From Geosiphon pyriformis uo1 (lineage: Eukaryota; Fungi; Glomeromycota): a stretch of 64,000 nucleotides of DNA. The position numbers and the translations under genes were made by a program. Within the stretch, counting starts at the first letter, position 1. Each line of letters begins with the position of its first letter. Under the pieces are notes generated by a model, which saw nothing but the letters and a program-made list of their open reading frames with translations, ran no database searches and had not been told where the DNA came from. The DNA lies in the NCBI GenBank assembly GCA_016748015.1, contig JAAOMT010000694.1, forward strand, positions 62,001 through 126,000. Reading direction: 5' to 3'. Below, piece by piece: positions 1-58,261 of the stretch.

Positions 1-1175
1 ATGCACACAGATTCTTCTTCAGCACACTTAGGAAGAGATGGAACAATACAAAAAACTCTTAAACATTACTTTTGGTCTCAAATACAAAAAGACATTTGAA
101 AATATGTAGAATTTTGTGATAGTTGTCAAAGAAAAAGAGGAACTTGCCCCACAGAACTTTTAAATCCAATCAAAGTTGGACAACTTTTTAACAAAGTTGG
201 AATTGATTTAATTGGACCATTACCTATCACAACTCAAGGAAATCGTTATATTGCAGTTGCAGTAGATTATTTTACCAAATAGCCTGAAGCTAGAGCCATC
301 CAAAGAGCAGATGCAAAATCAGTAACAAATTTTATCTATAAAGACATTATTTGTAAACATAGATGCCAATTGAACTCTTATCTGATCAAAGAACACATTT
401 TGTGAACAACTTGATACAAAAAATTTGTGAATAATTCAATGTCAAAAGACCTTTATTATCACCTTATTATACTTAAACAAATAGACTTGTAGAATGTTTC
501 AACAGAACATTATGTGAATCTCTAGCCAAAGTCTCAATAGACTTTGAACAAGAATAGGATATCTTTATTCCATCAGTGTTACTAGTATACAAAACACTAA
601 AACAAGATACTATAAAACACATACTATTTGATTTAACTTATAGAAGGACAGCAATATTACCAATTAATTTTACAGTGGAAACATACTCTGTGCAACCAAT
701 TAATGAAAAAAACTTTCAAAAAACACTTCAAAAAAGAGCCTATACTCTTCTTAGTACACTGGAAGGAAAAAGAAAGATAGCAGCAACTCATATTGAACAT
801 TCCCAAGCTCAACAAAAAGAAAGACATGACAACAAATTACCATTCATAACCAATAAATTTAAAGTTGGAAATAAAGTTCTCTTATACAAAACTAAGGCTG
901 AAAAACAATAGAGTAAGAAATTTGAAAACAAATAGGATGGACTATTTTATATTCACGAAATTCTAAACAATGGATTATACAAGTTAAGACTTGATGACAA
1001 AGTACTAGCAAAAGTTACACATGGAGATAGATTGAAACACTATCATTCCAGAAACAATCCTAAACTATTAATTCCACAAATTGGTACACATTTCTCTTTA
1101 GTTAATCCTGAAGATATTCCCCGAAATTTAGAACCAATAATTATAATAGAACAACAGCCAAACTTGAACACTTAA
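1..1175 (+). pseudogene. Integrase of A1, broken by stops and frameshifts
   Basis: H..H..C-D-S-C zinc motif, GIDLIGPLP, VDYFTK*PEA, K*DGLFYIHEILNNGLYKL, tail PEDIPRNLEPIIIIE. Confidence 0.92.
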
Positions 1176-1389
1176 TTCAACATAATTTTACAATAATCTT
1201 TTTTTTAATAACCCACAAAACATAAATCAAAAACAGTAAATAATTACAAAAAAACATTTAAACCCAAAAACAAATAAAAACTCTATACCCAAAAAATAAT
1301 TTTCTTTATTCTTTTTCAAACTTTGTTATTAATTAGTCATTTTTATCATAATTATTCTCCGAAATATTTAACAAATATCCCAAAAATTA

Positions 1390-2055
1390 ATGTTAGCTTT
1401 GAAAACACTTCTTGACTTATCCATAAAAATTAATGGAAGTCAAATTAATTACATTCAAAAAAAAACCACAGCCTCAATAGTAAATAATTTTCAGAACTAT
1501 TACTCTTATAGAAGAAAAACAAGAAGTCACTCTGGAAATAAATTACCAGAACTTTTGAAGCAAGCACTAAAAAAAAATCTTTTAATTGTTCCTATTGATA
1601 TTCCACCAAGTGCCACAATACAACAAAAACTTTTACTATTCCTTAATGAACAGAACAATAAACATACTCTTATATATAGATATTTTCTTATTGGAAAAAT
1701 ACTTTATGAACGAAAACTGAAACTTGAAGCAACCAACATCACTCCTGAGGCTATACAAAAACAAATTCACAATAAATTCAAAACAGCAGCTGGATTAACA
1801 AACACTTGCTACAAACTTAGAACAGTATCTAGACTCTATAATTTATTCAACACTTGTGAAAATGTCTTACAAAATCCAATACTCCATCCAATGAAGATTC
1901 AATATATTGGAAAACTCACAAAACTGAAATTTCAACAATTTTCAGACCAGATCATTTCAATTATTTTGGACCACTATCTTAATATTACAAATAGTGCTTG
2001 GACTTTGACAGAGCTCAATTTTGAGAAGGAAATTATGTTACCAGTAGAATTTTAG
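1390..2055 (+). CDS. ORF3 of A1, env-position protein of unknown function
   Basis: 221-aa open frame between integrase and 3' LTR; clear homologues at 50311-51018 and 43615-44320; last codons run into the LTR. Confidence 0.75.
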   Translation: MLALKTLLDLSIKINGSQINYIQKKTTASIVNNFQNYYSYRRKTRSHSGNKLPELLKQALKKNLLIVPIDIPPSATIQQKLLLFLNEQNNKHTLIYRYFLIGKILYERKLKLEATNITPEAIQKQIHNKFKTAAGLTNTCYKLRTVSRLYNLFNTCENVLQNPILHPMKIQYIGKLTKLKFQQFSDQIISIILDHYLNITNSAWTLTELNFEKEIMLPVEF

Positions 2056-3007
2056 CTATTAATTAGCATGAAATTACCTTTATAATTCCTATTATTAATT
2101 AGCATATATTATTATTATTTCAATTATCACTTATTATTTAATCAGATTATCAAATATCATTACTTAATCAATAATCCGATTTGTACTCTAGAAATTAAGA
2201 TAATCAAATTACACAATATCTTGAACCATTTAACATAGTCAAAATTCATCGAAATTAATGAAAATTGGCCGAAATAATCAAATAGTTCAGTGAAATAACT
2301 TGTAGTTTGCCGAAATGTATCTTTAGTTTTACCTAAATTGTAGCAAAAGAAAAGTGCAAGTTCAAAGACTAGTACTACAACAAGTTGTATAAAAGAAGAG
2401 CTTCTCTCTTCAAGAAAATGTATCTTCTCATAGTATCTTACCATAGCATCCTATCTTAGATATCTTAATTGAAACAAATCATCTTTTATACATTTAAATA
2501 AAAATTAAATAGTTGAGAAACAAATTCTTAAAATTATTACACTTGAAATTCTCTCAACACAACTAACGTTTTGAAATTGATTAGCTATCAATTTTAATAA
2601 ATTGTTAGTGACTCCAAACCTGGATAGAAAATGGTTTTTTTAATAAAATTTTATTTCTTTTACATTTTTTTTATTTTCTTTTTCTTTCTTATCATAATTA
2701 TTAGAGTAGCCTACAGATGAGATTCCTGTAGAAGAGTTGATTTTTACAGCAAAGTAACTACACATTTTTAGTGAGCTTCCAGATGGACAATTCCTGAAAA
2801 AGAGTTGACATTTACTACAATGTAACTACATAAAATAACTGGCAAGAAATTGGCCATTTCACTTATAAGCCCAGCAGTTCAAATTATAGGAGATAATTTG
2901 AAGATAAATTCAGTTATTGGAGGTCCAACTACTTTCTGGAAACATGAATTCACAGCAAATGAACATTAAAAACATTCAAGAAAAGAGACCAAAAACCTTT
3001 GGTAATA
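2036..3007 (+). repeat. 3' LTR of A1 (972 bp)
   Basis: Starts TGTTACCAG, ends GGTAATA (mutated GGTAACA); preceded by GAGAAGGAA purine tract. Confidence 0.93.
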
Positions 3008-5873
3008 CCAGATAGGTTTTTTTTCTTCTTCTTTGAACTTAATAAGTGGTGTTGTTGGTGTGGTAATTGGCTTGAAGTGGCCATATGTGGCTAGTACATG
3101 GGTGTGTTGACTGTTTTGACTAAGCTGAAGCTCTTGGATGTTCTAATCGAGTGTTGCATAAGTTTTAGACAGCCAGTCATTGCCAATGAGTACTTGGTAC
3201 TGAGTGGCTTCTATGATTAATACCTTGATCAGTACAATGATGCTATTGACTTTAATGAATAGGGCATCTATTTCACAAATTGAAGTCTTGGTGGTTTCAT
3301 CAGTGGTAATTATTCTTGCACTGGCAGCTCAATCAACTCGGCAACCTAATTGGTTCATGAGCTGTCTTGTGATGATGCTGCCAGCTAATCTATTATTTAA
3401 GATCAATTTGATGAGCTGACCATCAATTTTGGCATCAGTGTATATTGTTGTGATGGGTTTTTTCTCAAATGCAGTTCTACTGAACAAAGGAGTTTCTGTT
3501 GGTTCTTTAATTTTGAAGGGAAATATAGCTGCTAAGGACTTGTCTTCCATAATGGTAATGGGTGGTATGTTGCTGATAAGTGACTTCTGGTTTGTTTTCA
3601 AGTTATTAGATGGGGCATCTTCTGGAATAACCAAGAGACTTAAATAGTTCTGAAAACTTGGGTTTTGAGTATACCCAGTTCTTGAATTCTGCTGTCATGA
3701 TCTTGACAGCTGGTTGGATAAACTGGAAATTAGTTGATGAACAACCATTGCCAATCTCCAGTTTTGAATAACTTTAGATCTTGGGTTTCCTAATATTATT
3801 TGAGCAGAGTTTGATGGCAGTGTTTGAACTGGTGGTTGTTGATATATTACTTGTGGCTGTGGTTGATAAATAACTGGTGCTGCTGGTTGATAAAGTGGAG
3901 CTTAATATACCAATAGTTGATAAATTGGTGGCTGTGTTACTAGTAGGTAATTCAATTGATATATTTCTGAGTTGGGTTGATATTTTGGAGTTTGAAACTG
4001 GCAATTGGGATTTTAATATTGATTTTTTGATCGTTGGTTATCTATCCTTAACCTATAGTCAATCCTTAAATGCTCTTGTTTACCACAGTAGTGGCAAACA
4101 TGCATCTTTTGCTGCTATATTTGATTGGTCGAAGATGATAAACATGACTAATTTAGTGGGCAATTTATGCTTCCAAAATTGTTACATCATTAAAGTGACT
4201 GATAAATTGCATAATTGTCAGCTAAGTATTCTTTCAATTTCTGATTAATTGAATTACTGAGCTGTTTCAATTTGGAATCCAAATCAAATAATTTATTCAT
4301 GACTAGGTTAACGACTTGGGCATGGTTTGCTTCAAGTTCTGCTGATTTAAAATCTCTCGCATTGGTAACTGCATTCTGGAGAGTTTGTGGGTGCATTGGG
4401 TGTATGCATTGAAGAAGACTACTGCACAGTCCACAAATGAACTGGTTTAAAATCTGTGGTACTGTAAAATAGTCAGCTTAAATTGCTTGAATTTGGCATA
4501 AATTCCTGTGAAAACATCTCAAGTAAGTAGTAACTGCTTCAGTTTCTCTCTGTTTAATTGTGGTAAAGGTGTTGACTAGACAATTAATACTGTTATTATT
4601 ACTGAAATATTTCAAGAATGCAATCTTGAATTTCTGGAATATTTGAGGTTTGGTAGCTAAACTTTGATACCATGAGTTGGCAGTATCCTGTAAGAAATAG
4701 GGGATGGTTTGGAGTGCTCTTGTATTGTTCTATTCATTGGCCATAATGGCCTTTTCAATGTCATTGAGCTATATTTGGGCATTGTCTTCTTCACCAGTGA
4801 ATTTCTCAAGTTTTGCTATTGGAGCATAGGCCATTGGATCCAAGTTTGGTTGTTGAAGTTGTTGTTGTGGCTGTTGAAACAGCTGTTGTAGTTGTTGAAG
4901 TGGTTGAAATGGCTACTGCTAAATCAGTTCAATAATTGATTCAATTGGTGGTTGATTGATGACAATTACTGGAGGTAAGTTTTGCTGATTAATTGTTTTG
5001 GGGTTTGTATTGTTTGGGTTTTGAGGAGTTTGAAAGTTTGGAGTTTCAATTTCTGGATTTTCTAAATTTGGATCTTGCTAAGTCTGAAAGTTTGGGGTTT
5101 CAATGTCTGGGTTTTCTAGAATCAGATTTTAGTAAGTAAATTCTTGATCTTCGGCTTCTTTTTCTTTCTTCTCTTCTGATTCTGTTATCTCTCAGAGACT
5201 TGCATTTCCGAAATCTGGTTAAGGTGGTGGTGATCTGAATCCTGATGGCATTGGTAATTACAATTTAAATCCTTTAAAATAATTGCCATAGATTCCTAGT
5301 AATTCTGTTTTCTTTTGTTTACTTTGAAATAGGAGTCATCCAAATGTTGATGTTGCATTTGATGTGAATGTGCCTGTTGATAAAATGTTAATAGCACTTC
5401 TTAGTATATAATAGTATAATAGATTGGTTGGGGATTCAACTTTGGTTTTCTTCTAAGTGAGTAGTTGTATTTGTTTTGGTGTTATTGCTGGTGTTTGCAA
5501 TTTTTCTTTGCCTTTGTTTGCATAAGTGATTGGAAATTGTTGTTGTGTATATCTTTCAATGATTTGGTTTATTTCTCTAATGATTGGTGTGAAACTGTAG
5601 TTTTTTGGTAAGCTGGTATGTTGAAATAATTCTGTATAGAAATTTTCTCTTGTGGATTCAATGTTAACTGTTCTTCCTAAACAGTCTGTGATTTTGTCAT
5701 TGACATAAAAGTTGAAGGCTGACTCTGCTGGAAAATAGTTATTGTTTAATCCTAATTGTTGGCTGTACTATTAAAATAAGAATTTCGTAAATCCTAAATG
5801 GTTTGCTTCTATTCTTTCGAATTCTGTCACTTTTGGATGGGTGTAATTGGTGCTGGTTTTTTGTAGAATTATA

Positions 5874-5892
5874 CCTCACAGGAAGCACCAAA
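5874..5892 (-). promoter_or_regulatory. Primer-binding site of B1, TT-TGGTGCTTCCTGTGAGG
   Basis: Adjacent to the 5' LTR; complementary to a tRNA 3' end CCTCACAGGAAGCACCA, which resembles Ile(UAU) or elongator Met tRNAs (identity not verified). Confidence 0.8.
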
Positions 5893-6717
5893 TGTTACAG
5901 ATGATTATTTGGGGTCTTAAATCAAATAACAAACCTGTAACTTGGTACTCAATTGATTGGTAATATCTCAAGGTGTTGTTTTATCTGAAGGTTTTGTTAT
6001 GGAGTTTTTTGTATAATAGACAGAGATTTTAATAGTTGTTTTCAATAGCCTTCTAGAATTGCAATTCCATTGAATTTTTTTCTCAGTGTGATGGCTGGTA
6101 ATCTTCCTAGTAAGTTATCCTCAAATCTATGAGTGTTCTACCCTTGTTTCATGGGTCTTTTACCAGTTCCTATAATGTCTATAACTTAGTGCTTTAATTC
6201 TTAATCAATTAGGCAACCAAAAAGAAATACAAAGAAAATAAAAAAATGAGCAAAAGCAATTGCAAGTTAGTATCCCATCAATAGTCGTGATCAAGAGCTA
6301 TTATTCTAATGTGGTTAAGTATTAATTACTATCAACATAAAGTGTTGATAGTGGAAAGTAGATTAAGATAGTGAATAATTATTTATTGATATTTGTAAAT
6401 GAAAGATTGTTTAGATCAAATCTAAACTGAGAGGTCTGTTTTTTCTACTTCTAATACTACCACTATATATACATAATTGAGATTCTTTAATTTCTCAATT
6501 TTTTACACCAAGAATCCTGGAATTCCTAGAATTCTGCAATTTCTTTTGAGAGGAATCCTAGAATTCTAGAATTCTGCAATTCCTTGTATGAAAATCCTGA
6601 AATTCCTGGAATCTTGCAATTCCTCTTGAGAGGAATCCTGGAATTCCATATTTACTACAGCTACTTTTAATTGGCTAATTTATATGCTAATATACTTTCT
6701 ATATTTTATAAGTAACA
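5893..6717 (-). repeat. 5' LTR of B1 (825 bp)
   Basis: TGTTAC...GTAACA ends; homologous to 22182-23013, 31323-32171 and 38995-39835. Confidence 0.93.
6460..6650 (-). promoter_or_regulatory. B-LTR U3: three ~41-bp GGAATTC-rich tandem units followed by a TATA-like GTATATATAG
   Basis: Same repeat block and TATA-like motif in all four B LTRs. Confidence 0.6.
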
Positions 6718-7450
6718 CTGTTTATGTTGATCCCTTTTTTTTTCGCCAGTAATGTAGCCATTTCCATGTTTTTTTCTAAAGTAAAGATAGAACAAATAAT
6801 TTCTTTAAATTTTGAGAGGGTAGTAGTCCCTCTTAAAACCATTAACTAATGAAAATAATTTTCTGATGATTTGAGTTTTAGCTATGGCAGATTTGCCCTC
6901 TACTGCTGAAAAATTAATATCCAAAGTAAATGACTTTTTAACTGATACTTCAATTAAAGACTTAATGATTTTTGGGTCAAACCACTTTTTGTCTAAAGAG
7001 ATGAGCAAGCAAGAAAAAAGCACAATTTTATCATTATCTATATCAAAATTAGGAAACCTGAATAGAGAACTAAAGACAGCATTAGTATTAACACACTTTG
7101 TCTTAGGAGTAGTAGTAGCTGAGCCTAAAAAAAATCTACTATTCACACCAGACATGCTAATATTCTTATGATTACCAGACAAACTATCCACATCAGAGTA
7201 TATACTACCATCTGGCCCAAATTTATTCAAGGAGATATCTTTTTTATTATCAAAGTATTTAATATTGCCAAGAACAACTTTCTTCTTTTAAGAAAAAGAA
7301 CTACCAGCAAGACCATAAAAATCATTTTTGGATATCTTCTTTTTAGACATAATGCTATCTGCAATAGTCTCCAAGTTTATAAAAAATGAGTTATTAAGTA
7401 AAGAAATATTGATATAAACTAGCTGAAAAATAAAACTTCTTTTTTAGAAA
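6718..7450 (-). mobile_element. Degenerate non-LTR (LINE) ORF1 fragment, host of B1
   Basis: VKKSFTLDI and KLFSLVNGF match VKKSFILDI and KLFLKINGF at 14530-14650, which lie upstream of a LINE ORF2 start. Confidence 0.6.
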
Positions 7451-21226: not shown

Positions 21227-22181
21227 TTTGGTGCTTTTTGTAAGGTTATAAAAATCCACAGAGATAGAGCATTCCAGAAATTCACAAAAGTGACAACTTT
21301 TGAGATAGTAAGAAAAGATCATTTACCATATAAAAAAGCATTATTTTAATACTTTAGGCAAAATTTGAGAATACAACTTGAAGCTATCACTGCTGAAAAA
21401 AATTTTTGTCAATATCTACATGCAAAAATTGACTGTCTGTTAGGCTGAACAACAAACACAGAAAGAATTGGAGAACACCAAAAATTATTAACATACTTAA
21501 CAGAAATCATTACTCAAGTCATAACTGAAACTTTTCATATAATTAACAGAAAAATTAAAAAATACATAGCAAAATAGTATCCTTAAGAAAAAAGAAGACA
21601 ATTAGCAAAGCCCAACTTCATAGAATCCAAGTTTGAATCTGATAATACAACAACTGCATAAAAACAAGTCTGACTCATAGTTAATAAAAAGTCAAGATTT
21701 CTTTCATTAACTATTTTGTTATACTATCAGACACCAGAAAGTAGAATTCTATTCAACTAACTCATGAAAACACAAACAAAAACTCCAAAAACTCTTAAAA
21801 CTCTGTACTTCTAGGGTCATAATAATAATCTTTAGACAAAATCTCTGAAAAATATGAATTATTATTTAAGAATCTTACTCCAACAGCCAGCCAACCTGAT
21901 AAAAGCATATTCTCTTAGATATTACCACTAGCACAGCCTCTAATAAAGTTAGCAACCACTCCTACAGAAAAAACAACTATCTTGTTACCTATTAGTCCCA
22001 ACAAAAGAAAACAATCAGCATTAATATTTGGAAAACAATATAGTATCCTATCATCAATTCTCTTAGTCTCAATCAATAAACTATTTCTAATTAATCAAAA
22101 CATGGCTTACCAAAATATTGTTAGACTTGAGAAATTTTCTGGAAAAAAAAATAATACATATTCTTGGATTGTGGAAGCTGA

Positions 22182-23013
22182 TGTTACAGGTGATTATTTG
22201 GGGTCTCAAATTAAATAACAAAACCCATAACTTGGTGCTCAAAAGCTTATTTGCAATGATATGGATTTGAAGGTATTGTTATCTAAAGGTTTTGGTTAAG
22301 TCTTTTGTATAATGAACAGAGATGTAATAGTTGTTTATCCATAGCTTCCCAGAATCACAATTCTGTCAATTTCTTTCTTCAGCTTAATGGTCAGCAATTT
22401 TTTGGTAAGTAATCTGTATTCTTTACATGCTCTACTCATTCACAGAGATCTTTTACCAGGCAATTCTTAATGTCAATAATTCAGTGCTTAATCCTTAATC
22501 AATTAATAATCCAAAGAAATAACAAAAAAAATAAAAAAAATAAGCCAAGGCAATTTGCATGTTAGTATCTTATTAATAGCCATGATCAAAAGCTATTGTT
22601 TTAGTGGTATTTTAAGTATTAATTACTATTAACATGAAGTGTTAATAGTAATAGTAGATTAAGATAGCAAATAATTATTTATTTGATATTTGTGATGTGG
22701 AATGTTGTTTAGATCAAATTTAAACTGAAAGGTCTGTTTTTTCTATTTCTAACTCTACCACTATATATACATAATTGAGATTCTTCAATTTCTTAATTCT
22801 TCACACCAAAAATCCTGGAATTTCTGGAATCCTGCAATTCTTTTGAGAGGAATTCTGGAATTCTGAAATCCTGTGATTTCTTGTACGAGAATCCTAAAAT
22901 TCTTGGAATTTTGCAATTCCTCTAAAAAGAATCCTAGAATTCTACATTTACTATGATTACTTCTGATTGGCTAATTTATATGCTAATATACTTCCTATAT
23001 TCTATGAGTAACA
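22182..23013 (-). repeat. 3' LTR of B2 (832 bp)
   Basis: TGTTAC...GTAACA; pairs with 31323-32171. Confidence 0.95.
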
Positions 23014-23575
23014 TTATTTTTTTCTTTTAATATTGAGCTTTATTGAGATCTCCTAATTCTAATTCTCTATCTTTGAGTATTTTTTGAACTTTTTTTTCAA
23101 GAATTACTTGTGCTATTTTGTTCTATAATTCTTCAAATTAAGCATTGGTTATTTTTCTCATTTGGTTAATAATAATGAAATTTATTTCTGGATTGAGTAA
23201 GATTTCTGGTCGATCTTGAAATCCAGTATATAGCTGATAAATGGTTCTTGCTTGTGTAGTCAAATTGTTCTTTCTCACAAATTGTTCTAGTTGTTGCAGT
23301 ATTGTCCCAAATAAAAGTAACAAAAGTTTCTTGAAAATTGTTGTATCCACCAATTCCAAATTTCTATAGTCATTTCTTGATATTGGGTAACTTTTGGTTG
23401 TGTTTCTATTGCCAATTTCACTTTTGTGATTATTTTGTCAACAGTGTTTCTGTTTTTCTCTGTATTTTATCTTGTGGTTTTTTTCTGGTGTTTGTGTATC
23501 TGATAGTTTGTTGGTTGATTGTAATTTCTATTTTTTGTTGTTGGATTAGTTGGAAGAGTTGTTGTGTTAGTAAGT
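23014..23575 (-). pseudogene. ORF3 of B2
   Basis: QARTIYQLY...INQMRKITNA aligns with family A LRTVSRLYNLF...IQYIGKLT; same position before the 3' LTR. Confidence 0.6.
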
Positions 23576-23655
23576 AAATACTATCAATAATCTTCATTTT
23601 CTGCTGTCTTTTGTCATGTATATTATGTCTTTATATACTCCTTGGTTGTTCAATT

Positions 23656-25032
23656 TTACATGTTTGGTTCAATGATTATAATTGGTTCTAGATCTTGTGG
23701 AATCTTATTTGGTTTGACTAGTATTCTCTGTACTCCTAATTGTGAAATATTACTGATCAATAATAATATTGTACTGTGGTATTGTTTCAGTTAATCTCTA
23801 TGTGCTGCTTTGGTTAAAATTTTGTTGTTCAATCTTAATTTATAAGCTCTATTTCCAAGAATTTTTTCTATGTGAAATGGTCTATTCTATTTGGGGTCAA
23901 ATTTTCCACTCCATTGTTTTTCTATTTTGGTATGATGTAAAAGTACTTTGTCTCCAATTTTGAATTCAACTAGTTTTTCTGATAGTTGGTTATTGTGTCT
24001 TTTTTTTTGTTTTTTTTGTTTTTTTTGTATATTATTAGCTGCTCTTCATCATGTGTTTTTTAGTGTCTTTATTAAGTTATATGTTCTTCTTAACAATGTT
24101 TTTTGGAAATTTTTCTCTGTTATTGGTTCTGTTTAATATGTTTTGACTTCTATCTTAACTGGTAATGTTGCTGTTCTACCATATATTAATTTAAATAATG
24201 TTGCTTGTATAGTGTTTTGTTTCATTGTCCAATAAGCAAATAATACTGATGATATAATTAAATCTTATTTATTCTGGTTTTTTTGGCTGATTTTGGCTAT
24301 TGCTTCACACAATGTTCTATTGAATCTTTTAACTAATCTATTGGTTTGTAGATAGAATAGTGATAATAGTGGTCTTTTGATTCCAAATCTTTGACTTAAT
24401 TCTGCTAATGTTTTATTCACAAAGTGGGTTTTTTGATCTGATAATAGTTCTTTTGAGCATCCATATTGACATATCAAATCTTGATGAATGAATTCGGCAA
24501 CAAATTCTGCATCTGCTCTTTGAATGGCTTTTGCTTCTGGCCATTTAGTGAGATAATCCATGGCTACTGCAATATATCTATTGTCTCTGCTGGTTATTGT
24601 TAATGGTTCGACTAAATCAATTCCAATGTGATCAAATGGCTGTCCTACTTTAATTGGTCTTAACAGTTTGCTGGGTTTTGTTTCATCTCTTCTTTGACAA
24701 GCATCACAATTTTGAACATATTAGATGATGTCTGGATACATAGATGACCAGTAGTATCTTTTTCTAGTTTTTTCTATGATTGTTTCTTTATGAAAATGTC
24801 TTGTTGTTGGATCTGAGTGCATGTTGAATAGTATTGTTTCTTTCTTTGGTTCTGTGATTACTCTGGTTGGTTGATCTGAATTTCTTTTGTTCTTCTGGTA
24901 AAGTATATTTTGGTAATTAATAAAATATTTTAATTGTTGTTTTATGTTGTTTTGTTCCTTTTGAGATAATTTCTCCTTGAACAATTGGGTATTTATATAA
25001 TATTAGAGTTGTTGGTATTTTTGTATATTCAT
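23656..25032 (-). pseudogene. Integrase of B2
   Basis: HSDPTTRH..CDAC, DYLTKWPEA, LSDQKTHF, tail IPQDLEPIIIIE. Confidence 0.92.
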
Positions 25033-25074
25033 GTTTTGTTATATTTTTGGGTTGAAATGTTTTTAAATTTGTCT

Positions 25075-26350
25075 TATTCATGACAAACTGTCAGCATTTC
25101 TATTGTTTTTTCTCTTTTTATAATGTACTATAAATATATATGGTAATAGTGCTATTTTCTATCTTGCATAGTGATCATCTCCAAATTCTTGCTTCTGGAT
25201 TGAAGTCAATCCTTTGTGATTAGTGTACACATCAAACTTTTAACTCAAGTATTCTTTCCATTTGGTAACAGCCCAATAGATAACTAAGTGTTCCAGTGCT
25301 GGGGTTCCATAGTTTTTTTTAGCTGGACTTAAGCTTCTACTGGTATAAGCTACTGGGTGTTTTCTTTTATCTGGTCTTTTTTGTGATAGTACTGTTCCTA
25401 ATGCTTGGCCTGATGTATCAGTGGTGATGATGAATAGTTTGCTGTAATCTGAATACATCAACACTAGAGCTTGGATAAGTTTTCTTCTTAATATGTCAAA
25501 AGCTTTTTGCTGAGCTTCTGTCCATTTGTACTTCACATTTTTGGTTTGTAGATAATAGAGTGGCTGGGCCAGTTTAGAAAAGTTCTTGATAAAGTGGCAG
25601 TAATAGCCTGCGAACCCCAAAAATGCTCTAAGTTCTATCAAGTTGGTTGGTACTGAAAAGTTCTTTACTATTGCAATCTTGTCTGGATCCATTTTAATAC
25701 TATCTTTGCTTATAACATGTCCCAAAAACTTGAGTTCTGTTTTTCCAAAGAAACATTTGTTTGCATTCAACTTTAATTCTGCTCTTCTCAATCTTTCAAA
25801 CACTTGTTGAAGATAATATAGATGGTTATTAAATGTTTTGAAGAACACATTTGTGTTATCTAAGTAAACAATTATGGATTTCCACAGTAGTTCAGTATAG
25901 ACAATTTTCATGAGCCATTGAAATGTTGCTGGAGCATTCATTAAGCCAAATGGCATCACTTCAAATTCAAAATTTCCTTCTCATATTATAAAAGCCATTT
26001 TTTCTTTGTCTTCTGGTTTTATGGCTACTTGCCAGTAACTATTGTCTAAATCCAAAGTTGAGAATCATTTCTTTCCTCCAAAAGCATCAAACAGCTTTTG
26101 GATTTTTGGCGTTGGATAGTTATCTCCTTTGGTTACTCTATTCAGTTTCCAGTAATCCACACAAAAGCAGATTTTTCTATTCTTTTTATAGACTAGTATC
26201 ACTGGTAATGACCATAGGCTCATTAATGGCTGAATTAGCTCGTTGTTAAGCATCTGATTGATTTCTTAATGAATGATTTCATGGCTGGCTGGTGGTATTC
26301 TGTGTGCTTTTTGTTTAATTGGCATTGCATCTTTAGTCTTGATCTGGTGC
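25075..26350 (-). pseudogene. Reverse transcriptase and RNase H of B2
   Basis: CVDYWKLN, MPFGLMNAPATFQ, VYLDN, FLGH, TDTSG..G.VLSQ, NYGTPALE. Confidence 0.95.
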
Positions 26351-26889
26351 TAGATTATATCAGTTTTACCAAATTTGTTTTTATTGGCAAAGATGTTATT
26401 GAAATTGTTGAGTAACATCTTGAGTTGCATCTGTTGAAGTGGGTCTAAGTTTCCCAAGTTTATCTGTTCCAATTGTTTTGGTTGGAGTAAATAACATTCT
26501 TCTTGTCTGTATATTGTTTGAGATATGATATCTACATATTCACACAGTTGTGGAAAGTCTGATATAGCATCTGGCAGTTGGTCTTTAATTTTGGTGGTTA
26601 AGTATCCAATAATGATTTCTTCTGGTATCTTGATGACATTTCTCATATTGTTGTAAATAGAGATTTTAATGTAACTGTGGTTCTTGGCTGATATGTGTAA
26701 ATTGACTAATTCAGTTTTTCTTGATTTACAAAGTGTTACTTCTGTCTTAAAAATCTGAATCTGATCTTTTACTTTTCTTTCTATGATTACTATGTACTGG
26801 TCATATAGTGGAATGAAAATTGGTTGATGGGTGGAGATAATTTTTTCCTTGTCAATAATTTCTTTCTCTGCCATATTAATTGGTACATC

Positions 26890-27290
26890 TATTCTATCTA
26901 TTGATTTGAATTCCTGTATTCTTATAGCTGTAATCTTTAATTCTTCTCTGTTTTCTACTGATACTAGTTGAGTTATTTTAACCAGAAGTAGGAATATTGT
27001 CTGTGTTATTTTTTCATTTGGCTCTAAGATATAGACCTTTTCTAAGTTATTTTGTAACATAGCAATAATATTTTCTATATATTCTGTATCAATTATCCCT
27101 TTTCTGATGTTGATTCTCTGTTTTGCTAGACTACTTCTAGATGCTAGTTGAACCATAATTGTTGTTAGAATTTCCAGCGCTACTTTGAGATCAATACAGG
27201 TGCATAAATGTGGTTCCAATTTGATGGCATTTTTTTCAGAATATCTTAGATCAAACTCAACATCAGTATCATGTACGTGTTCTGGCATAA
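26890..27290 (-). pseudogene. dUTPase domain of B2 pol
   Basis: DVEFDLRY, SRSSLA, GIIDTEY, EKITQ, decayed RG..GFGS motif. Confidence 0.88.
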
Positions 27291-28559
27291 TACTTTTGTC
27301 ATTATTACTGAACCACTTCAATTCTTGCTCCTTGATAAAATCAGAAAGTGCAATGTATTGCTCAGAGTTTGAATCTGAGTTAGAATTATTATGGTTATTG
27401 CTGTTGTTATTTTGAATGAAACTGGAACTGTTGTTTTCATTATCATTGTTGTTGGGGTTTGAATTGGGATTGAAAATTGATTCCAATTCTGATGTACAGT
27501 TGTTGATTTGTTTGTTTTTCTTTGAAATCATGTATATCATGTGGATTGGTGAATTGTAAATGAAATCACACTTATTACAATATTAAAAGTCACAGGAAAT
27601 TAAGCAATGTTGACATAATTAAGTATTCAACTGTTCCAAATGCTGCTTTTGTTTTTCTCTAGTGAGTGCTAATCACTAATAATGTTTGTAGAATTCTTCT
27701 GGATTGTTCTCAATGTTGCCAAAAACATTGAAAGTTTGAACGTATTTAGGTTCAGGAAAAAATAAAGGATTGTTTTTGATTTCTAGTAGTTCACTAGTTG
27801 TTATGTCTTCTGCTTTCACATCTGCCATTCTCCAGAGTTCATGTTCGTTATAGAGATATCTTTCCAATCATTGCAATGCTCGTTTCCAGGTGTCATTGAT
27901 TGGTGTTCCTTTGTGTATCCAGTTGTTGATTAAGATTGTATACTGACACATTTTATTACACGTTTCTCCATGCCCAAGAATGTTATTTCATATTTTTTTA
28001 TTAGGCAAAATAGTTTCACATGCGAAACATGGTTTGTTGTTTTACTTTTCCTGTCATTTTGGTCATCCAAAGCATTTTATAATACATGAGCAGCAGTAGA
28101 ACTTGGTTGCCATTTGGTATTCCTTATCATTACTACAGTATGCACCTATTGATAACAATTTTTTGCTGCAATCAATGCATATAAGCTTTGGTCGACAATA
28201 GGTGGATTGTTGTGATGTAGTGTGGATGTAATAATTATAAGTGGTGCTGGTAGGTGTTGTTTTTTCTTCTTTTTTTTTTCTTTTTTCCTTGTCAATTTCT
28301 TTCCACTTCCAAGTTAATAAGTTGTCCAGATCATTGTCAGTTTTTCAAACTTGGTTAGCATTCCAAGTAAGTTTTTTTTTTTGTTTTCCTTTTCTATTGT
28401 TATTCCAAGAGAGTATTGGTGGTAGTTCATTGTGGTCTTCTTCAGCCCATGACACTTAATAGGCTTCCCAGGTAGGTTTCTTTTCTTTTTCTTTGAACTC
28501 AATGAGTGGTGCTGACATGTTAGTGATCTTGAAATAGTCACATGTGGCTGGTACATGTG

Positions 28560-31260
28560 TGTGTTAACCATTTTGGCTAAGTTGAAGCTCCTGTGTATTC
28601 CAATCAAGTATTGCATTGGTTTTGGATAGCTAGTCATTGCCAACAAATGCTTGATATTGAGTGGTTTTTATGACTAATACCTTGATTGACATGAAAATGC
28701 TATTGACTTCTATAGGAAAGTCATCAATTTTGCCAATCAGAGTTTTGGTCACTCCATTAGCAGTGATGATTTGTGCACTGACAGCTCGATTAACTTGGCA
28801 ATCTAATTGGTTTATGAGTTGTTTTGTGATAATACTGCCAGCTGATCTACTGTTTAAGATCAGTTTAATGAAGTGGCCATCAACTTTGGCATCAATGTAC
28901 ATGGTAGTGATAGATTTTTCTTTAAAAATAGCTTCACTAAACAATGACATGGTTGATGGTTCCTTAAGTTCAAATGGGAAAATGGCATCCAGTAATTTGT
29001 TTTTGGTAATAGTAGCTGGTAGAATGTTGCTGGTAAGTGTTAATTGTTGGTTGGTTTCCAGGTTATTGAGTTGGGTGTCTTCTGAAATAACCAGAAAACT
29101 TAAATAGTGTTGGGAATTCGGGTTTTAGGTGTGCCCAGTTCCTGAATTCCAAGAACGTAATCCTAATTGTTGTGTGGAAGAGCTGGGAATCAGTTGGTAA
29201 ACAACCATTATCAATCACCAATTTTGTGTGACTCTCGATCTAGAGTTTCCTAATATCATCTGAGCTGAGTTTGATGGCAGTGTTTGAATTGCAGATGTTT
29301 AATAAATTATTTGTGGCTGTGGTGATTGATATATTACTTGTGGTTGCAGTTGATAAACTGGAAGTTGATATATAAGTAGTTGATATATTGTCTGCTGTGT
29401 TATTGACAAGTAAGTGGATTGATATTGTTCTTGATTTGAGTAATGATTTGGAATTTGAACTCTGTGATTGGGGTTTTGGTATTGATTTCCCAATTGTGGA
29501 TTACTATAAGAATGGCAGTTAGTTTTAATGTGACTTTGTTTACCACAGTTGTGGCAGACTCGTATCTCTGACTGCCATGGCTGATTGAATGATGATGATA
29601 AACATGACTAATTTTGGAAATGATTTGTGTTTTCTGAATTATTGCATTATTGTGGTGGTTGATAAATTGTATGATTGTCAGCTAAGTATTCTTCTAATTT
29701 CTGATTAATTAAATCACTAAGTTGCTTCAATTTAGAATTCAAATTAGATGATCCATTTATCACTAGATTTACAGCTTGAGCATGGTTTACTTCAAATTCA
29801 GCTGCTTCAAAATCTCTGGCATTTGTAACTGTGGCTTGAAGGTCTGCTGGATGTATTGGGCATATGTACTGAAAGATGCTACTGTGCAGTTCTCTAATGA
29901 ATTAATTCAGGATTTGTGGCACTGTAAAATAATCAGCCTATATGGCCTGAATTTGGTGCAGATTTTTGTGAAAACATCTTAAATAAGTGATAACAGCTTC
30001 ATTTTCTCCTTGTTTAATGGTGGTGAAGGTATTTGCTAGGCAATTGATACTATTATTATTGTTGAAGTATTGTAGGAATGCAAGCTAGAATGCATTAAAA
30101 TTTTGCTGTTTATTGGTTAAGCTTTAATACCATGAGTTAGCAGTATCTTAGAGAAAATAAGAGATGGCTTGCATGGCTCTGGTGTCATTCCATCTGTTAG
30201 CTGCAATGGCTTTTTCTACATCATTCAGTCATACTTGGGCATCATCTTTTTTACCAGTGAATTTCTCGAGTTTAGCTATTGGAGCATAAGCCCTTGGTAT
30301 GATCAGTTGTTGGTATAGTGGTTGAAGTTGTTGTTACAACTATGGAAGTGGCTATGGTGGTTGTTGAAGTAATTAAAGTAGTTGTTAAAGAGATTGCTAA
30401 AGTGGCTGCTGTTGAATTGGTTCAATAATCAGTTCAGTTGATGGCTAATCAATGACAATTACTGGAAATAAGTTTTGTTGATTAATTGTTTTGGGATTTG
30501 AATTGTTTTGAGTTTGCTGAGTTTAAATGTTCAGAGTTTTAACTTCTGGATTTTCTAAGATCAGGTTTTAATAAGTAAATTCCTGACCTTCACTTTCTTT
30601 TTCTTCTGATTCTGTTACTTCCCATGAACTCACAGTTCCAAAATTTGGTTGAGGTGGTGGTGATCAAAATTCTGATGGTGTTGGTGATTGTGATTTAAAT
30701 CTTTCAAAATATTTGCCATATGGTTCTAACAGCTCTGTTCTTTTTTGTTTACTTTGAAATAAGAATCATCCAAAGGTTGATGTTGTGTTTGATAGGAACA
30801 TGTCTGCTGAGGAGATATTAATGGCACTTTTAAGTATATAATAGTATAATGGATTGGTTGGTAATTCAACTCTGGTTTTCTTCTAAGTGGATGGTTATAT
30901 CTGTTTTGGTATTACTGCTGGTGTTTGCAATCTTCCCTTGCCTTTGTCTGCATAGATAATAGGGAATTGTTGTTGGGTGTACTTTTTAATGATTTGATTG
31001 ATTTCCCTGATAATTGGTGTGAAACTGTAATTTCTTGATAAGCTGGTATGTTGAAACAAATCTGTATAAAAATTTTTTTTTGTGGATTCAATGTTAACTG
31101 TTCTTCCTAAGCAGTTTGTGATTTTATTGTTGACATAAAAATTAAAGACTGATTCTGCTAGAAAATGGTTATTGTTTAATTCTAATTGTTGGCTGTACTG
31201 TTGAAACAAGAATTTGGCAAATCTTAAATGGTTTGCTCCTATGATTTCTGATTCTGCTAC
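28560..31260 (-). pseudogene. gag and aspartic protease of B2
   Basis: AYAPIAKLEKF, CHNCGKQSHIKTNC knuckle, LILNSRSAGSII (decayed DSG). Confidence 0.9.
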
Positions 31261-31322
31261 TTTTGAATAATTGTTGTTAATACTGGTTCTCTGTAAGATT
31301 ATACTTCACAAGAAGCATCAAA

Positions 31323-32171
31323 TGTTACAGGTAATTATTTGGAGTCTTAAATTAAATAACAAAACCTGTAACTTGGTGCTCAAAAGCTTATTTACAATAA
31401 TGTGGATCTGAAGGTATTGTTATCTGAAAGTTTTGGTTGAGTTTTTTGTATAATAGACAGAGATACAATAGTTGTTTATCTATAGTTTTCCAGAATCACA
31501 ATTCTGTCAATTTCTTTCTTCAGCTTGATGGCTGGCAATCCTCTGGTAAGTAATCTATATTCTTTATGTGTTCTACCCACTTGTAAGGGTCTTTTATTAG
31601 ACAATTCTTGACATCAATAATTCAGTGCTTAATTTTTAATCAATTAGTAATCCAAAGAAATAACAAAAAAAATAAAAGAAATAAGCCAAGACAATTTGCA
31701 TGTTAGTATCCCATCAATAGTCATGATCAAGAGCTATTGTTCCAGTAGTGTTTTAAGTATCAATTACTATTAACATGAAGTGTTGATAGCAATAGTGGAT
31801 TAAGATAGTGAATAATTATTTATTTAATATTTGTAATGTGGAATGTTGTTTAGATTAAATCTAAACTGAGAGGTCTGTCTTTTTTATTTCTAACTCTACC
31901 ACTATATATACATAATTGAGATTCTTTAATTCCTCAATTCTTTACATCAGGAATTTTGGAATTTTTGGAACCCTATAATTTCTGGAACCCTGCAATTCCT
32001 TTGAAAGGAATTCTGGAATTCTGGAATCCTGTGATTCCTTGTATGAGAATTCTAAAATTCCTGAAATCTTGCAATTCCTCTAAAAGGAATCCTGAAATTT
32101 CATATTTACTACAGTTACTTCTGATTCGCTAATTTATATGTTAATATACTTTCTATATTCTATGAGTAACA
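31323..32171 (-). repeat. 5' LTR of B2 (849 bp)
   Basis: TGTTAC...GTAACA, adjacent mutated PBS; one extra short U3 repeat compared with the 3' LTR. Confidence 0.95.
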
Positions 32172-35100
32172 CCAAGAAAGCAATTACCACCAACAATTGG
32201 AATAATAACAGAACAATCCAAACATTGTTTTTTTTTCTGATGAAAATGGCAAATTCATGGTACCAAAGTCTTGAAAAGAAACCAACTGACTTTGCTGCTT
32301 TTAAATTTGCTTTTTTGTGATATTTTTGTGATCTTAATACACTCATCAGATTACAAAATCAGTTTAATATAGTAAAACAAAAAGATCATAAAACCATAAC
32401 CACTTATTTTGGACAATTTAATTAAATCCTTCAACAGATTTAAACAATTGAAAGAGACTATTACACACCTGGACAAATTTTTAACCAATTTATTAAAAGA
32501 TTAAGAAGTAACATCCTATAATCAATAAGATTTTGACATTCAACAAACTTACAAGAAGCAGTTTTTTTTGCTTACAACTTTGAATCAGCAGAACAAGAAG
32601 CCAATCACATTCAAGCTATTAATTTGGCCATCAATAGAACCTCTAATATTGATAAAAACTTACCCAATTAAGTGAGAAATTAATTCAGAAAATTGAGAAA
32701 TTCTTAGTTAATACTACAGGAATCTATTAGTCATCTTAGTAAAAAGACAACAACAACAGATACCAATCACAACAAAATTATTAATAACAACAACAACTCT
32801 GGAGATCAAATTCCTGCAACTGTTACTATTTTTAAAAATCCAGACATATTGCCCAAAATTTTCAAAAGAAAGTAACTAACCAAAACTGAAAAAATCAATA
32901 TTAATAACAACCAAGATATCCTCAAGCCATAGGACCACAACACTCAGCTCCTTAATATCAATTGCCACAGTACTCACAACAAATGCTTCAGAATTACTAT
33001 CAGCCACTATTAGCAATGACTCAGCCAGTATCTTAGTACCAAAACTCTGTATATAGTTAATTAAAACCACAAGCAATTGACTACAATTAAGGATGACAAA
33101 ACATCAGTGAAAATTAATTACAATCTATCAGTGGGCCATCCCAACTAATCAATCATAGCAATACAACACTCTGACCAATGCCAACTGGATATCTCAATCA
33201 AATCTTGTATCTTGGTCTTACCAAAACTCCAAATTTTAGTAATGTTACATCTTTAGAAGAGAAAAATGTAAGTAAACTTTCTAATTTTTCGACTCCAAAA
33301 ACCATCTTAACTACCACCACCATTCCATCTGCTACCATTATAAAAGACACCACTCTGGCTGCTATATTTTTCTTTGACCTTGATAATCTAAAAAACATCA
33401 CTGACTTTTTTAGCAGAATTGTTATTAACCAAAACAAACCAATCATGGTAATGTATACTGACACTTGAATAGAAAAAATAGACATTAAATTGATACTTAA
33501 CAGTGAATTTGCAGATAACATAATTATAAAACAATTTATAGATCAATTAGGTTACTGAGTGAATCAAGCAGCTACTGTCCAAATTATTACAAAAAATAGA
33601 AATACCAAGATTTCAATAAGAGAGATTGACAATTTTTTCTTCAAAATTAGCAGAATTCAAAAACTTACTAATGTTTTCATTATAGAAGCTATTCAATATT
33701 AAGCTTTTATAGAAAATAAATGGCTAATAAAAGTCTATGCTATTTTAAATTAGAATATACAAGAGCTTCAAATCATTTTTAAAAAACAACATGCTTAAGT
33801 ACCTGCAACATGTAAACACTTCCAAATGACAACCCTAAAACAATTATTAATCAAATTCAATGAACTGATTTTCCAATTAAACTTAAAAACATACCAGATT
33901 TCCTGGGTAGACAATTTTCAAACAGAGCTTTCATCAACCCCTACTTGGGAAGATAAAGAAAAAAAAAAAGCTAATAAAAAACATTAAGTTCTATCACCAA
34001 TTTATCAAACACCATATTAAAGAGATCAACTATATCAATCTTTAATACTAATTTGTATTGATTGTAAAAAAAAATTATCTTCAATAGACATCTGTGTTGG
34101 AGACAACAAAGTTTGGTTGACTGCCATAAAATATTATTGTTAACTGTGTGTATTAAAAAAATTCAGACAACTAAAACAGTAGAACAAATAGGACAATACT
34201 TCTTATTTAGCATATAGTGAAATTTTACCCAATAAAGTCTATAGAATAATGTTTCTAGAAGAAAAAAAATCTGTGATAAGTCTTGTTATTACACTATCCT
34301 AATCAATAACTAGATGCAAAAAAGAACTTTGTTTGCTGCAGTATATTAATAGATAATAAACTAACTGGAGAACTATTTTTATAATGAAAAAAAAATTTGG
34401 AAAATGGCTCTAACAAAATGTGAAGAAACCACCATCAAAAAAATACACACTATTAAAAATATCTTCATAATTATTGAAAAAATAGATGACCTATTCACAA
34501 ATAACTTAAAAGCATTTTAAGACCAATACTAAGAATTGGCTTCTATTTGAGAGAAACAAAAGCAAAGACTAGTTGACCTTAATACAAAGTTGTGCAATTA
34601 TTGTCTGATTTTTTGTCATTTTTAGTACTGCAATAAGTATAATTTCTTATTTAATCTATCTTAAAAAATGTTATATCCTATTGTAGAATTATCAGAATTC
34701 AAAGAAGACCATGAATTAATCACTGAAGACATGTCATTTCAAGAGCCAAATAAGACTGTTAAAATAGAACAATACCTTGTCTACTCTGATTTTTCTAAAG
34801 AATTGAAATTAAAATGATATAGTGACAACTATAAAAAAATATGCCTGGAGAAAACACATAAAACTGATCCTAATTTCGACTTAAAATATTTTGGACAATT
34901 ACCCATAGTTATAGCTCCATATTTTCTTATAACAATAGACTTAAAGATAGTTTTAGAAATTTCTATTAGTATGATGATACAAGTTACATTTCAATTTAGT
35001 CTGAACAAGAAAAAAATTGATGTAAAAAAAGAAATTATTAACACCAGATACACAAGAAACATTATTATGATGTTATAAAACAATTCAGACTAATTCTACA

Positions 35101-38994: not shown

Positions 38995-39835
38995 TATTAC
39001 TTATAAAATATAGGAAGTATATTAGCATATAAATTAGCCAATCAAGAGTAGCCATAGTAATGTGAAATTCCAGAATTCTTCTTAGAAGAATTGCAGAATT
39101 CTAGGAATTTCAGAATTCTCATGCAAGAAATTGCAGAATTCCAGAATTCCAGGATTCCTCTCAAAAGAAATTGCAGAATTCCAGGAATTCCAAAATTCCT
39201 GGTGTAAAGAATTGAGAAATTGAAGAATCCTAATTATGTATATATAGTGATAGCATTAGAAGAAAAAAAGACAGACCTCTCAGTTTAGATTTGATATAAG
39301 CAATATTCCACATTACAAATATTAATAAATAACTATTTACTATCTTAAATTTACTCTTTACTATTAACTCTACATGTTAATAGTAATCAATACTTAACAT
39401 TTTGAAACAATAGCTCTTGATTATAGCTATTGACAGAATATTAACTTGCAATTGCCTTGGCTTATTTCTTTATTTTCTTTTATGTTCTTTTGTTAATTCT
39501 TTTGTTTTACTAATTAATTAAGAATTAAAAAGTGCTGAGTTACAGACATTATAAGGACTGGTAAAAGATCTGTGAAACAAGGGTAAAGAACTCATAGATT
39601 TAAAAATAGCTTACCAGGAAGATTACTGGTCACCATGCTAAGAAAGAAATTTGACGGAATTGCGATTCTGGGAGGTGACTGAAAAACAACTATTGAATTT
39701 CTGTGCATTATACAAAGAACTCCACAAAAATCTTCAGATTATGAAAACCATCAGAAACCAACAGCATTATATTAATTGAGCACCAAGTTACAGATTTGTT
39801 ATTTGCTTTGAGACCCCAAATAATCACCTGTAACA
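38995..39835 (+). repeat. 5' LTR of B3 (841 bp)
   Basis: TATTAC (mutated TGTTAC)...GTAACA; reverse-complement homologue of the other B LTRs; preceded by CTGC. Confidence 0.93.
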
Positions 39836-42621
39836 TTTGGTGCTCCCTATAAAGTATAATCTTACAGAGAACCAGCATTAACAACAATTATCCAAAAGTG
39901 ACAGAATTAGAAATAATAGGGACAAACCATTTAGAATTTGCTAAATTCTTATTTTAACAGTACAGCCAACAATTGAGCTTAACCAATAATCATTATCCAG
40001 TAGAATCAGCCTTCAACTTTTACATCAATGAGAAAATCACAGATTTTCTAAAAAGACCAGTTGACATTGAATCAACAAGAGAAAATTTCTATACAGAATT
40101 AATCCAACACACCAGCTTACCACAAAATCACAGTTTTGTACCAATTATCAAGGAAATCAATTAAAAAATTAAAAAATATACTCAACAACAATTCTCTATT
40201 ATCTATACAAACAAGGGTAAAGAAAAGTTACAAACACCAGCAACAACACCAAAAGAAATACAATTACCAATATAAAAGAAACAAAAAATTGAATCTCTAC
40301 TATATTTATTATATTATCACATACCCAGAAGTACCATCAACATCACATTAACAGACACATCTATATCAAACATGACATCAACATTTGGACAACTACCATT
40401 TCAAAGTAAACAAAAGAAAGCAGAATTATTAAAAATCTATGGCAATTACTTTGAAGGATTTAAATTGCAATTGCCAATGCCATCAGAATTCCAATCACTG
40501 CTATCTTTACCAGATTTTGGAACCGCAAATTCTTGAGAGATAATAGCATCAAAAAAAAAGAAGAAAAAAATCAAGAATTTAATTATCAAAATCTGATTGC
40601 AGAAAATCCAAAAGTTAAAACTCCAAATATTCAAACCCAGTAAACTCAAAACAATCCAAACTTTGAGTTAATTAATCAGTAAACCTTACTTCTAGAAATC
40701 ATCATTAATCAACAACCAATTGATCCAATTGCTAAACAACTTCAATAGCTGCCAATACTACCTTAGCAATTACCACTTCAACCATTATAACAATCAAACT
40801 TAGATCCAATGGCCTACACCCCAATAGTAAAACTCAAAAAATTTATTGGTAAAAAAAACAATGCCCAAGTGTGGCTGAATAATATGGAAAAGACTATTAC
40901 AGCCAACAGATGGAATAATGCCTGAGCCATACAAGCCATTTCATACTTTTTTTAAGATATTACCAACTCATGATATTAGAGCTTAGTCAACAAACTTCAA
41001 GATTTTAATGCATTCAAGCTTGAGTTTTTGAGATATTTTAGCAACAATAACAGTATTAATTATTTAACTAATACCTTTATCATCATCAAGCAAGAAAAAA
41101 CTAAAGCAGTCACTACTTACTTAAGATGCTTCTATAAAAACTTGTGCCAAATACAAGCAATTGATGTAAATTACTTTACAGCACCACAGATTCTGAACCA
41201 GTTCATCTATGGACTGTGCAGTAGTATCCTCCAACACATATGCCCAATACACTTACAAACTCTCCAAGATGCAATTACCAATGCATAGAATTTCAAATCT
41301 GCCAAACTTGAAGCTAATCATGCTTAAACCATCAATCTAGTAATGAATGGATTATCTAAATTAAATTTTAAGTTGAAACAATTTAGTGATTCTATTAACC
41401 AAAAATTAGAGGGATATTTAGCTAACAATTAGACAATTTATTAATTTCCACAATAACACAATAATCAAGGAAACACGAATTGTTTTTAGAATTAGTTATA
41501 TTTATTATCCTCAACCAATCAACAGTGACAACAGAAGACACATGTTTACCACTACTGTGATAAATAAAGACATTTGAGAATTGACTGCAGATTAAGAATA
41601 GATAACCAACAATTGGGAAATCTATATTGAAACTCTGATTACCAGTTTCAAACTCTGAGATATCAATCCAATCTAGAAATATATCAATCAAATTACCTAC
41701 TAGTAATGCAGCCACCAATTTATCAACCACCCATGTATTAGACTTCAGCACCAGTTATTTATTAACTGCAGCCACAAATAATATATCAACTCCAACAAAT
41801 TTCTACACTGCCACCAAACTCAGCTCAGATAACATTAGGAAATCTCAGATTAAAAGTCACTCAAAACTGGAGATTGGCAATAGTTGTTTTCCAACTAATT
41901 CTCAGTTTATTTAACCAGCCATCAGGATCATACCAGCAGAGCTCAGGAACCAGATATACCCAAAACCTGAGTTCTCAGAACTATTTAAGTCTTCTGGTTA
42001 CCCCAGAAAATGCCTTATCCAATAACATAGAAACCAACCAAACACAACCATTTACCAACAACATACTTCCAGCCATTATTACCAATAATGAATCACTAGC
42101 AGCAATCTTCCTATTTAAACTTGAGGAACTGTCATTCATGTCCTTGTTCAGTGGAGCCACATTCGAAGAAAAACTGATCACTGTCATGTACACTGATGTT
42201 AAAGTTGATAACCACTCCATCAAACTGATTCTAGATAATAGATCAGTTGGCAGCATTATCACAAGACAACTCATAAACCAATTAGGTCACTGAATTGATT
42301 GAACTGTCAGTGTAAGAATAATTACAGCTAATGGAGCCATCAAGACTCCAATTGGTAAAATAGATAACTTATCCATTGAAGTCAATGGCATCATCATACC
42401 AATCAAGATATTAGTCATAGAAGCCACTCAATACCAAGTACTTGTTGGTAATGATTGGTTGTTTAAAACCAATGTGATGCTTGATTAGAATACACAAGAG
42501 CTCCAACTTAGCTAGAACGGTTAACACACATATGTACCAGTCATGTGTGACCACTTTAAGCCTATTATTACACCATCAGCACCTCTTATCAAGTTCAACA
42601 ATGAAAAAAAAACCTACCTGG
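38995..42621 (+). mobile_element. Family B element B3, 5' part (LTR, gag, protease)
   Basis: LTR, PBS TTTGGTGCTCCC at 39836, MAYTPIVKLKKF, protease 42180-42560; interrupted by A2. Confidence 0.93.
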
Positions 42622-44320: not shown

Positions 44321-44456
44321 TGATAAAATTGACTAATTATGAAAAGAGAGAATAAAAAAAATTATTTTTTGGATATGGGATTTTTATTTGTTTTTGGGTT
44401 TGGGTGTTTTTTGTAATTTATTTACTATTTTTGTCTTTGTGTTTTTATTGTAAAAT

Positions 44457-58216: not shown

Positions 58217-58261
58217 TTTGAATTTGTTGTTGCTGTATTATTTCTGTGGAAGAGCACCAAA

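Follow-up and report, generated by a model that had tools for sequence, protein, structure and literature searches.

The window analysed here is a 64-kb stretch of the genome of the glomeromycete Geosiphon pyriformis (C357:62001-126000), taken from an assembly of 128 Mb with a GC content of about 30%. Self-BLAST and repeat finding revealed two related retrotransposon families with long terminal repeats (LTRs) within the window, designated A and B. Family A elements are about 9.9 kb long and consist of LTRs of 1.0 kb (TGTTACC...GGTAACA), a gag region of 2.2 kb and a pol region of 5.7 kb, and family B elements are about 10 kb long with LTRs of 0.84 kb. A Ty3-type gag, a dUTPase and an integrase core were detected in family A with Pfam. 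The Retrotrans_gag / Ty3_capsid matches are located at 56847-57377 and 60034-60756, and on the minus strand the rve integrase core (51401-52075) is preceded, on its upstream side, by the dUTPase (54375-54776). The minus-strand open reading frames (ORFs) of one B copy, B2, gave Pfam matches to RVT_1, RT_RNaseH_2 and dUTPase. By these domains, A and B are both dUTPase-bearing Ty3/gypsy elements. Judged by sequence features, both are assigned to Ty3/gypsy (Metaviridae), family A on the basis of its LTRs, 4-bp target-site duplications (TSDs), Ty3 gag, dUTPase and integrase, and family B on the basis of its LTR pair and gypsy-type reverse transcriptase/RNase H.

Three copies of family B, named B1, B2 and B3, are present, all of them full-length with both LTRs. 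Elements of family A are inserted in B1 and B3. The features are compiled in Table 1, together with further insertion events in B copies from elsewhere in the assembly that are discussed below.

Table 1. Features of the window and insertion events in other B copies. Positions without prefix are those of the window; positions with the prefix B are those of family B.
Feature	Position	Strand	Details
A1, 3' part of family A element	1..3007	+	3' LTR 2036-3007; element start at C357:37705, outside the window; BLAST against other A copies
CCAG, right TSD copy of A1	3008..3011		left copy TCAG at C357:37701-37704
B1, 5' LTR and gag part	3008..6718	-	aligns to B sense 1-3705; pol part C357:31361-37704
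B2, full-length family B, uninterrupted	22181..32172	-	LTRs 22181-23013 / 31322-32171
Empty target site in B2	28468..28471		CCAG on the plus strand, CTGG on B sense; both B3-half alignments overlap by 4 bp here
B3, 5' LTR and gag part	38997..42621	+	ends with TSD copy CTGG 42618-42621
A2a (outer), 3' LTR and pol part	42622..49355	-	LTR 42622-43634, pol 43635-49355; polypurine tract (PPT)-like purine run adjoins LTR
A2b, complete 9.9-kb family A element	49356..59236	-	inserted into A2a, at its gag/pol border; LTRs 49356-50330 / 58262-59236; TSD CTGT
A2a, gag part and 5' LTR	59237..62455	-	gag 59237-61460, LTR 61461-62455; Retrotrans_gag / Ty3 capsid; primer-binding site (PBS)-like TGGTGC adjoins LTR
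B3, pol part	62456..64000	+	begins with second TSD copy CTGG 62456-62459; 3' LTR ends at C357:130832
Full-length B element, C404	B 3702-3705		TSD CCAG/CCAG
Third-family LTR element of 11.4 kb, C663	B 3702-3705		TSD TCAA on both sides
B LTR, C688	B 3702-3705
B-like LTR, C785	B 3702-3705
B site 6138 (CTGG)	B 6138		3 events: B LTR, A LTR, third-family-like LTR; verified by sequence
B site 7633 (CCAG)	B 7633		1 event: A LTR; verified by sequence
B site 8461 (CCAG)	B 8461		1 A junction and 1 probable; rests in part on a 20-nt string match
B site 8011 (CCAG)	B 8011		2 probable events; 20-nt junction strings with 0-1 mismatch, which cannot be native sequence
B site 7499 (CCAG)	B 7499		2 probable events; 20-nt junction strings with 0-1 mismatch, which cannot be native sequence

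The A elements in B1 and B3 turned out to occupy the same nucleotide of their hosts. At 3007 the LTR of A1 terminates with ...GGTAATA; CCAG and ATAGGTTT come next. The second insert begins with TGTTACC at 42622, preceded by ...AAACCTAC and CTGG, and terminates with ...GGTAACA at 62455, followed by CTGG and GAAGCC. B2 is continuous across the CCAG at 28468-28471 and thus represents the empty site. In BLAST alignments the junctions of both inserts and the empty site in B2 fall on the same coordinates of the B sense strand, 3702-3705. Both inserts are antisense to their B hosts, and each has a 4-bp TSD. These results confirm what a first-pass annotation of the sequence had claimed about the shared nucleotide, the antisense orientation, the TSD of the second insert and the empty site.

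Two other statements of that annotation had to be revised. It had treated the second insert, A2, as one element. Its junctions with the host B3 were correct, but the outer element, A2a (42622-49355 and 59237-62455), carries a complete second A element, A2b. Furthermore, the 3' LTR had been described as facing the host protease. The orientation of ORFs, PBS and PPT revealed instead that the 5' LTR of the A elements faces the pol side of the host, and that the 3' LTR adjoins the gag side. A2b has the same orientation as A2a, with the TSD CTGT at 49352-49355 and 59237-59240, and what looks like a tandem array of LTRs and internal regions (LTR-int-LTR-int-LTR) is this nest. The site of A2b within A2a was considered as a homologue of the site in B and rejected, as its map position is about 310 bp upstream of the homologous one.

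A1 is the 3' part of a block of 27.3 kb (C357:37705-65007) that reaches 24 kb upstream of the window, and its two TSD copies differ from one another (TCAG/CCAG). Later nested insertions of about 17 kb in total (C357:37827-55275) interrupt the 5' LTR of A1 after about 120 bp; they include A3, a complete A element from a different subfamily (C357:39294-49132). The two TSD copies are identical for A2a (CTGG/CTGG), A2b (CTGT/CTGT), A3 (CCAG/CCAG) and a further B element, Bx (CCAG/CCAG).

The shared nucleotide could result from one insertion that was copied or from two insertions. The LTRs of one element are identical at insertion, and the distance between A1 and A2a can therefore not exceed their own LTR-pair distances if both descend from the same event. 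The Kimura two-parameter distance (K2P) between the LTRs of A1 and A2a is 0.19-0.20, compared with 0.075 for the own LTR pair of A1 and 0.056 for that of A2a, and common descent is ruled out for this reason. For every element compared, the nearest neighbour of each LTR was the other LTR of the same element. The K2P values of the host LTR pairs are 0.123 for B1 and 0.164 for B3. The A pairs are thus younger than the pairs of their B hosts. Nesting into resident copies would produce this order, whereas the copying of a composite by B would produce the reverse. An older host than insert was found for A in B, for A2b in A2a and for A3 in A1. In the Bx/By nest, the LTR pair of the insert (0.173) was nominally older than that of the host (0.136), but the difference amounts to only about 1.6 standard errors.

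The first-pass annotation had offered a B[A] composite of about 20 kb, transposed as a unit, as one explanation. Such a composite would have arisen once and then been copied by segmental duplication or by retrotransposition via the B LTRs, so that A1/A2 and B1/B3 would go back to one insertion. A1 and A2 indeed share nucleotide, orientation and contig at a distance of about 35 kb, the distance between A1 and A2a (about 0.20) is numerically close to that between B1 and B3 (about 0.19), and one BLAST high-scoring segment pair spans both junctions. Nevertheless, we consider this origin very improbable. In addition to the distance of 0.20, which is larger than the 0.056-0.075 within the A elements, a composite would require A LTR pairs whose divergence equals or exceeds that of the B pairs, and they are in fact about half as diverged. 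Neither the inserts nor the hosts form sister pairs, as both A2a and B1 have many closer relatives elsewhere. For the start of the A2a LTR, over 30 copies elsewhere in the assembly are 94-98% identical, compared with 81% for A1, and no fewer than 38 B copies resemble B1 more closely (79-84% identity) than B3 does (about 75%). Two of these B copies were read directly, and both have the empty site. Lastly, B1 and B3 cease to be similar in BLAST at the element boundaries, and in other B copies the identical nucleotide is occupied by B or third-family inserts.

A transfer of the occupied site between B copies by ectopic recombination or gene conversion would be conceivable, as B copies are numerous and their identity of 75-84% is sufficient for occasional conversion. 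However, the divergence between the inserts is 20% and they come from distinct subfamilies or families, every locus has retained intact TSD copies, and the host sequences of B1 and B3 near the junctions are no closer to each other than the rest of the element, with no high-similarity tract seen. This makes conversion, if anything, even less credible than the composite. Integration of host and insert together, with cDNA as the target, was also rejected, because the LTR pairs of the A inserts are clearly younger than those of the hosts and because the host site on C663 (see below) had mutated before insertion. Taken together, A1 and A2a are separate insertions of different family A subfamilies into resident chromosomal B copies, and the flanking 4-bp TSDs bear the signature of an integrase.

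The LTR distances should be read as relative values. The differences between the LTRs of one element are nearly all transitions, with 519 transitions versus 20 transversions in five B pairs (B1, B2, B3, By and Bx) and 188 versus 20 in four A pairs (A1-A3 among them). C-to-T changes occurred in CpA, CpT, CpC and CpG contexts alike, and CpG accounts for 0.5% of the dinucleotides. This decay of the repeats resembles repeat-induced point mutation (RIP) or the action of a deaminase, and because of it LTR divergence is ill suited as an absolute clock here.

Next, the target sites of family A were characterized. When 74 A LTR ends were inspected on their external side, the 4-bp TSD had a Y-R centre (N-Y-R-N) in 72 of the flanks, compared with a background of 23% (p ~1e-43). 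Family A has about 2,500 LTR starts genome-wide. A 19-nt probe matched 520 LTR starts exactly in the whole genome; 235 of these are internal, PBS-side junctions, and about 285 are external ends. Of the external ends, 19 follow CTGG and 13 follow CCAG, and the sum of 32 (11%) represents an about 19-fold enrichment over the 0.6% that these motifs contribute to all 4-mers. No single target motif dominates in family A, and CTGG is not palindromic. The possibility that the Y-R centre is a decayed CpG is unlikely, because at each locus the two TSD copies match, and because the 1,335 empty sites described below read CCAG/TCAG.

The whole assembly was then searched with junction patterns, and the matches were read in sequence. 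Outside the window, four more B copies were found to be occupied at exactly B 3702-3705 (Table 1). The inserts are unrelated beyond the family level, and thus A1, A2a and these four elements represent six independent events. The presence of TCAA on both sides of the insert on C663 indicates that the host site had acquired two transitions before the insertion, and the target was therefore an old chromosomal copy. The element on C663 (C663:699862-711257) has the termini TATTATAGG...CAGATAACA, and its LTRs have no BLAST similarity to those of A or B; a related LTR end was found at C771:461650. Ten junction candidates were read, and two of them, on C785 and C688, were real, and eight were noise. 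Pattern matches on C773, C463, C454 and C531 arose by chance, as the flanks of the junctions are not B, and the candidates L036-L039 are native or empty sites.

A 22-nt pattern of the empty site had 1,335 matches in the whole assembly, and a control pattern had none. Family B therefore has at least 1,335 copies, about 0.45% of which are occupied at 3702. If most of these were full-length 10-kb copies, they would amount to roughly a tenth of the 128-Mb assembly. Each B copy contains about 77 CTGG/CCAG sites. Six other sites of this kind were used as controls, and five of them had also been hit (Table 1). For the sixth, the CCAG at B 6871, junction patterns revealed no clear insertion event, with a left-junction pattern that was swamped by native B sequence. 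When the two events that first drew attention to the site are subtracted, four events are left at 3702, a number comparable to the counts at the control sites (3, 2, 2, 1-2, 1 and 0). Therefore, site 3702 does not appear to be special, and the coincidence is largely ordinary.

An alternative is that 3702 is a dedicated hot spot, structural or bound by a factor, that is located just after the conserved purine/A-tract at the gag/pol border and is used by at least three families in a fixed antisense orientation, beyond the CTGG bias. The conserved 20-nt block following the purine/A-tract, at a position like that of a central PPT, a bound host factor or a distortion of the DNA would be candidates. 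In favor of this possibility, the six events come from three families and represent the top count among the seven sites, all five orientable inserts are antisense, and about 20 nt at the site are better conserved than the surroundings, with an A-rich purine run immediately upstream. However, only about 0.45% of 1,341 copies are occupied, the four events without the ascertaining pair do not exceed the control range, the orientation bias is not significant, and the host site on C663 already read TCAA when it was hit. No tRNA genes or Rfam families that could tether a Ty3-like complex were found in the 64-kb window, and a protein-binding site is beyond the reach of computation. Overall, a hot spot, taken as a whole with all its candidates, is rather unlikely.

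Independent of any role in integration, the B sense sequence at 3660-3725 (28450-28515 in B2) comprises a purine-rich/A-tract run followed by a block of about 20 nt that is more conserved among six diverged B copies than the adjacent sequence. At the gag/pol border of B, the run and the block might possibly represent an internal PPT or another cis element.

We consider ordinary nested integration, in which a target bias for a short motif acts on a hugely abundant host family, the probable explanation for all of these events. The Ty3/gypsy elements of A, B and the third family would integrate with a 4-bp stagger at targets that are nearly always N-Y-R-N, with CTGG/CCAG strongly favored. Each conserved CTGG/CCAG site in B would have been offered more than 1,000 times, so that it would collect several independent hits. 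A1 and A2a would then share a nucleotide because of the N-Y-R-N/CTGG bias and the huge copy number of B; uniform random insertion does not predict such a coincidence, whereas motif bias together with B copy number does. The bias presumably resides in the integrase, and bias and copy number might suffice on their own for the observed counts. Two B copies in one window that are occupied at the same site are individually unlikely, but about one such case would be expected over about 2,000 windows.

Several results weigh against this explanation. Based on about 1,400 A insertions and about 100,000 CTGG/CCAG sites in B copies, a rough expectation would be about 0.3 A hits per B site. The observed value is about 0.7 or more, and B and the third family add further hits; thus, this back-of-the-envelope rate is several-fold below the observed one. 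The six events at 3702 are the highest count among the seven sites examined, with at most three elsewhere, and two of the six are subject to ascertainment bias. The counts per site are lower bounds with unequal pattern sensitivity; native B sequence that resembles LTR ends flooded the right-junction patterns at sites 8011 and 6138 as well as the left-junction pattern at 6871, and these match lists were read in part. Furthermore, all inserts at 3702 whose orientation could be read, five of five, are antisense to the host (two-sided p ~0.06). An asymmetry between CTGG and CCAG was tried as the cause of this orientation, but the 9:2 ratio of a first sample was not upheld genome-wide, where the ratio in family A (19:13) is not significant, and the motif alone leaves the orientation unexplained. 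In rough terms, motif bias multiplied by copy number accounts for the recurrent hits to within a small factor. The shortfall of the expectation suggests that some additional preference for TE (transposable element)-rich DNA is likely.

The first-pass annotation had proposed that family A has a preferred site within family B, as a retrotransposon that parasitises another. The insertions are indeed independent and non-random; the preference, however, is for the N-Y-R-N/CTGG/CCAG class of sites and not for family B or for nucleotide 3702. No support for parasitism was found, and other CTGG/CCAG sites in B have been hit repeatedly.

It is common for younger LTR elements to be nested within older ones. 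The Geosiphon case resembles maize-type nesting in that younger LTR elements reside in older ones, but differs in that identical nucleotides are reused, through target bias and a very high host copy number. Nucleotide-level reproducibility is shared with tethered integration, e.g., of Ty3 at RNA polymerase III start sites, of Tf1 and of Ty5. In contrast to Ty3/Tf1/Ty5/DGLT-A-type tethering, no RNA polymerase III gene or recognizable tether is present at the B site and many sites are reused, and the reuse of many different sites points to a sequence bias rather than a tether. Elements of the Drosophila gypsy group choose the short targets TATA, CGCG and ATAT and generate a 4-bp TSD, and sequence-specific integration has been called exclusive to errantiviruses and their derivatives (PMC5408687). 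The errantiviruses gypsy, ZAM and Idefix and their two-ORF derivatives share with the Geosiphon elements a Ty3/gypsy-type integrase, a 4-bp TSD and a reused short target. The Geosiphon elements differ in being fungal, in having a dUTPase and in a looser N-Y-R-N bias, with CTGG/CCAG at about 11% and CTGG being non-palindromic, and they would thus lie outside the errantivirus group of that study. Ty3/gypsy elements containing a dUTPase have been described in fungi (PMC2864245). The elements of Phanerochaete, Tuber (Tmt1) and Postia (PosPlaTy3) have in common with those studied here the gag, dUTPase, reverse transcriptase/RNase H and integrase domains in a fungal LTR element; the Geosiphon elements come from a glomeromycete, and the comparison is one of domain content.

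In summary, the attractive reading of the locus is corrected, as it harbors neither a composite nor a parasite. For insertion dating, this means that identical junctions must not be counted as identity by descent. An abundant Ty3/gypsy group of Geosiphon picks its targets by a short sequence rule, which is useful for the annotation of nested TEs in glomeromycete genomes, and which adds a fungal instance of sequence-biased Ty3/gypsy integration beyond the insect errantiviruses with described specificity.

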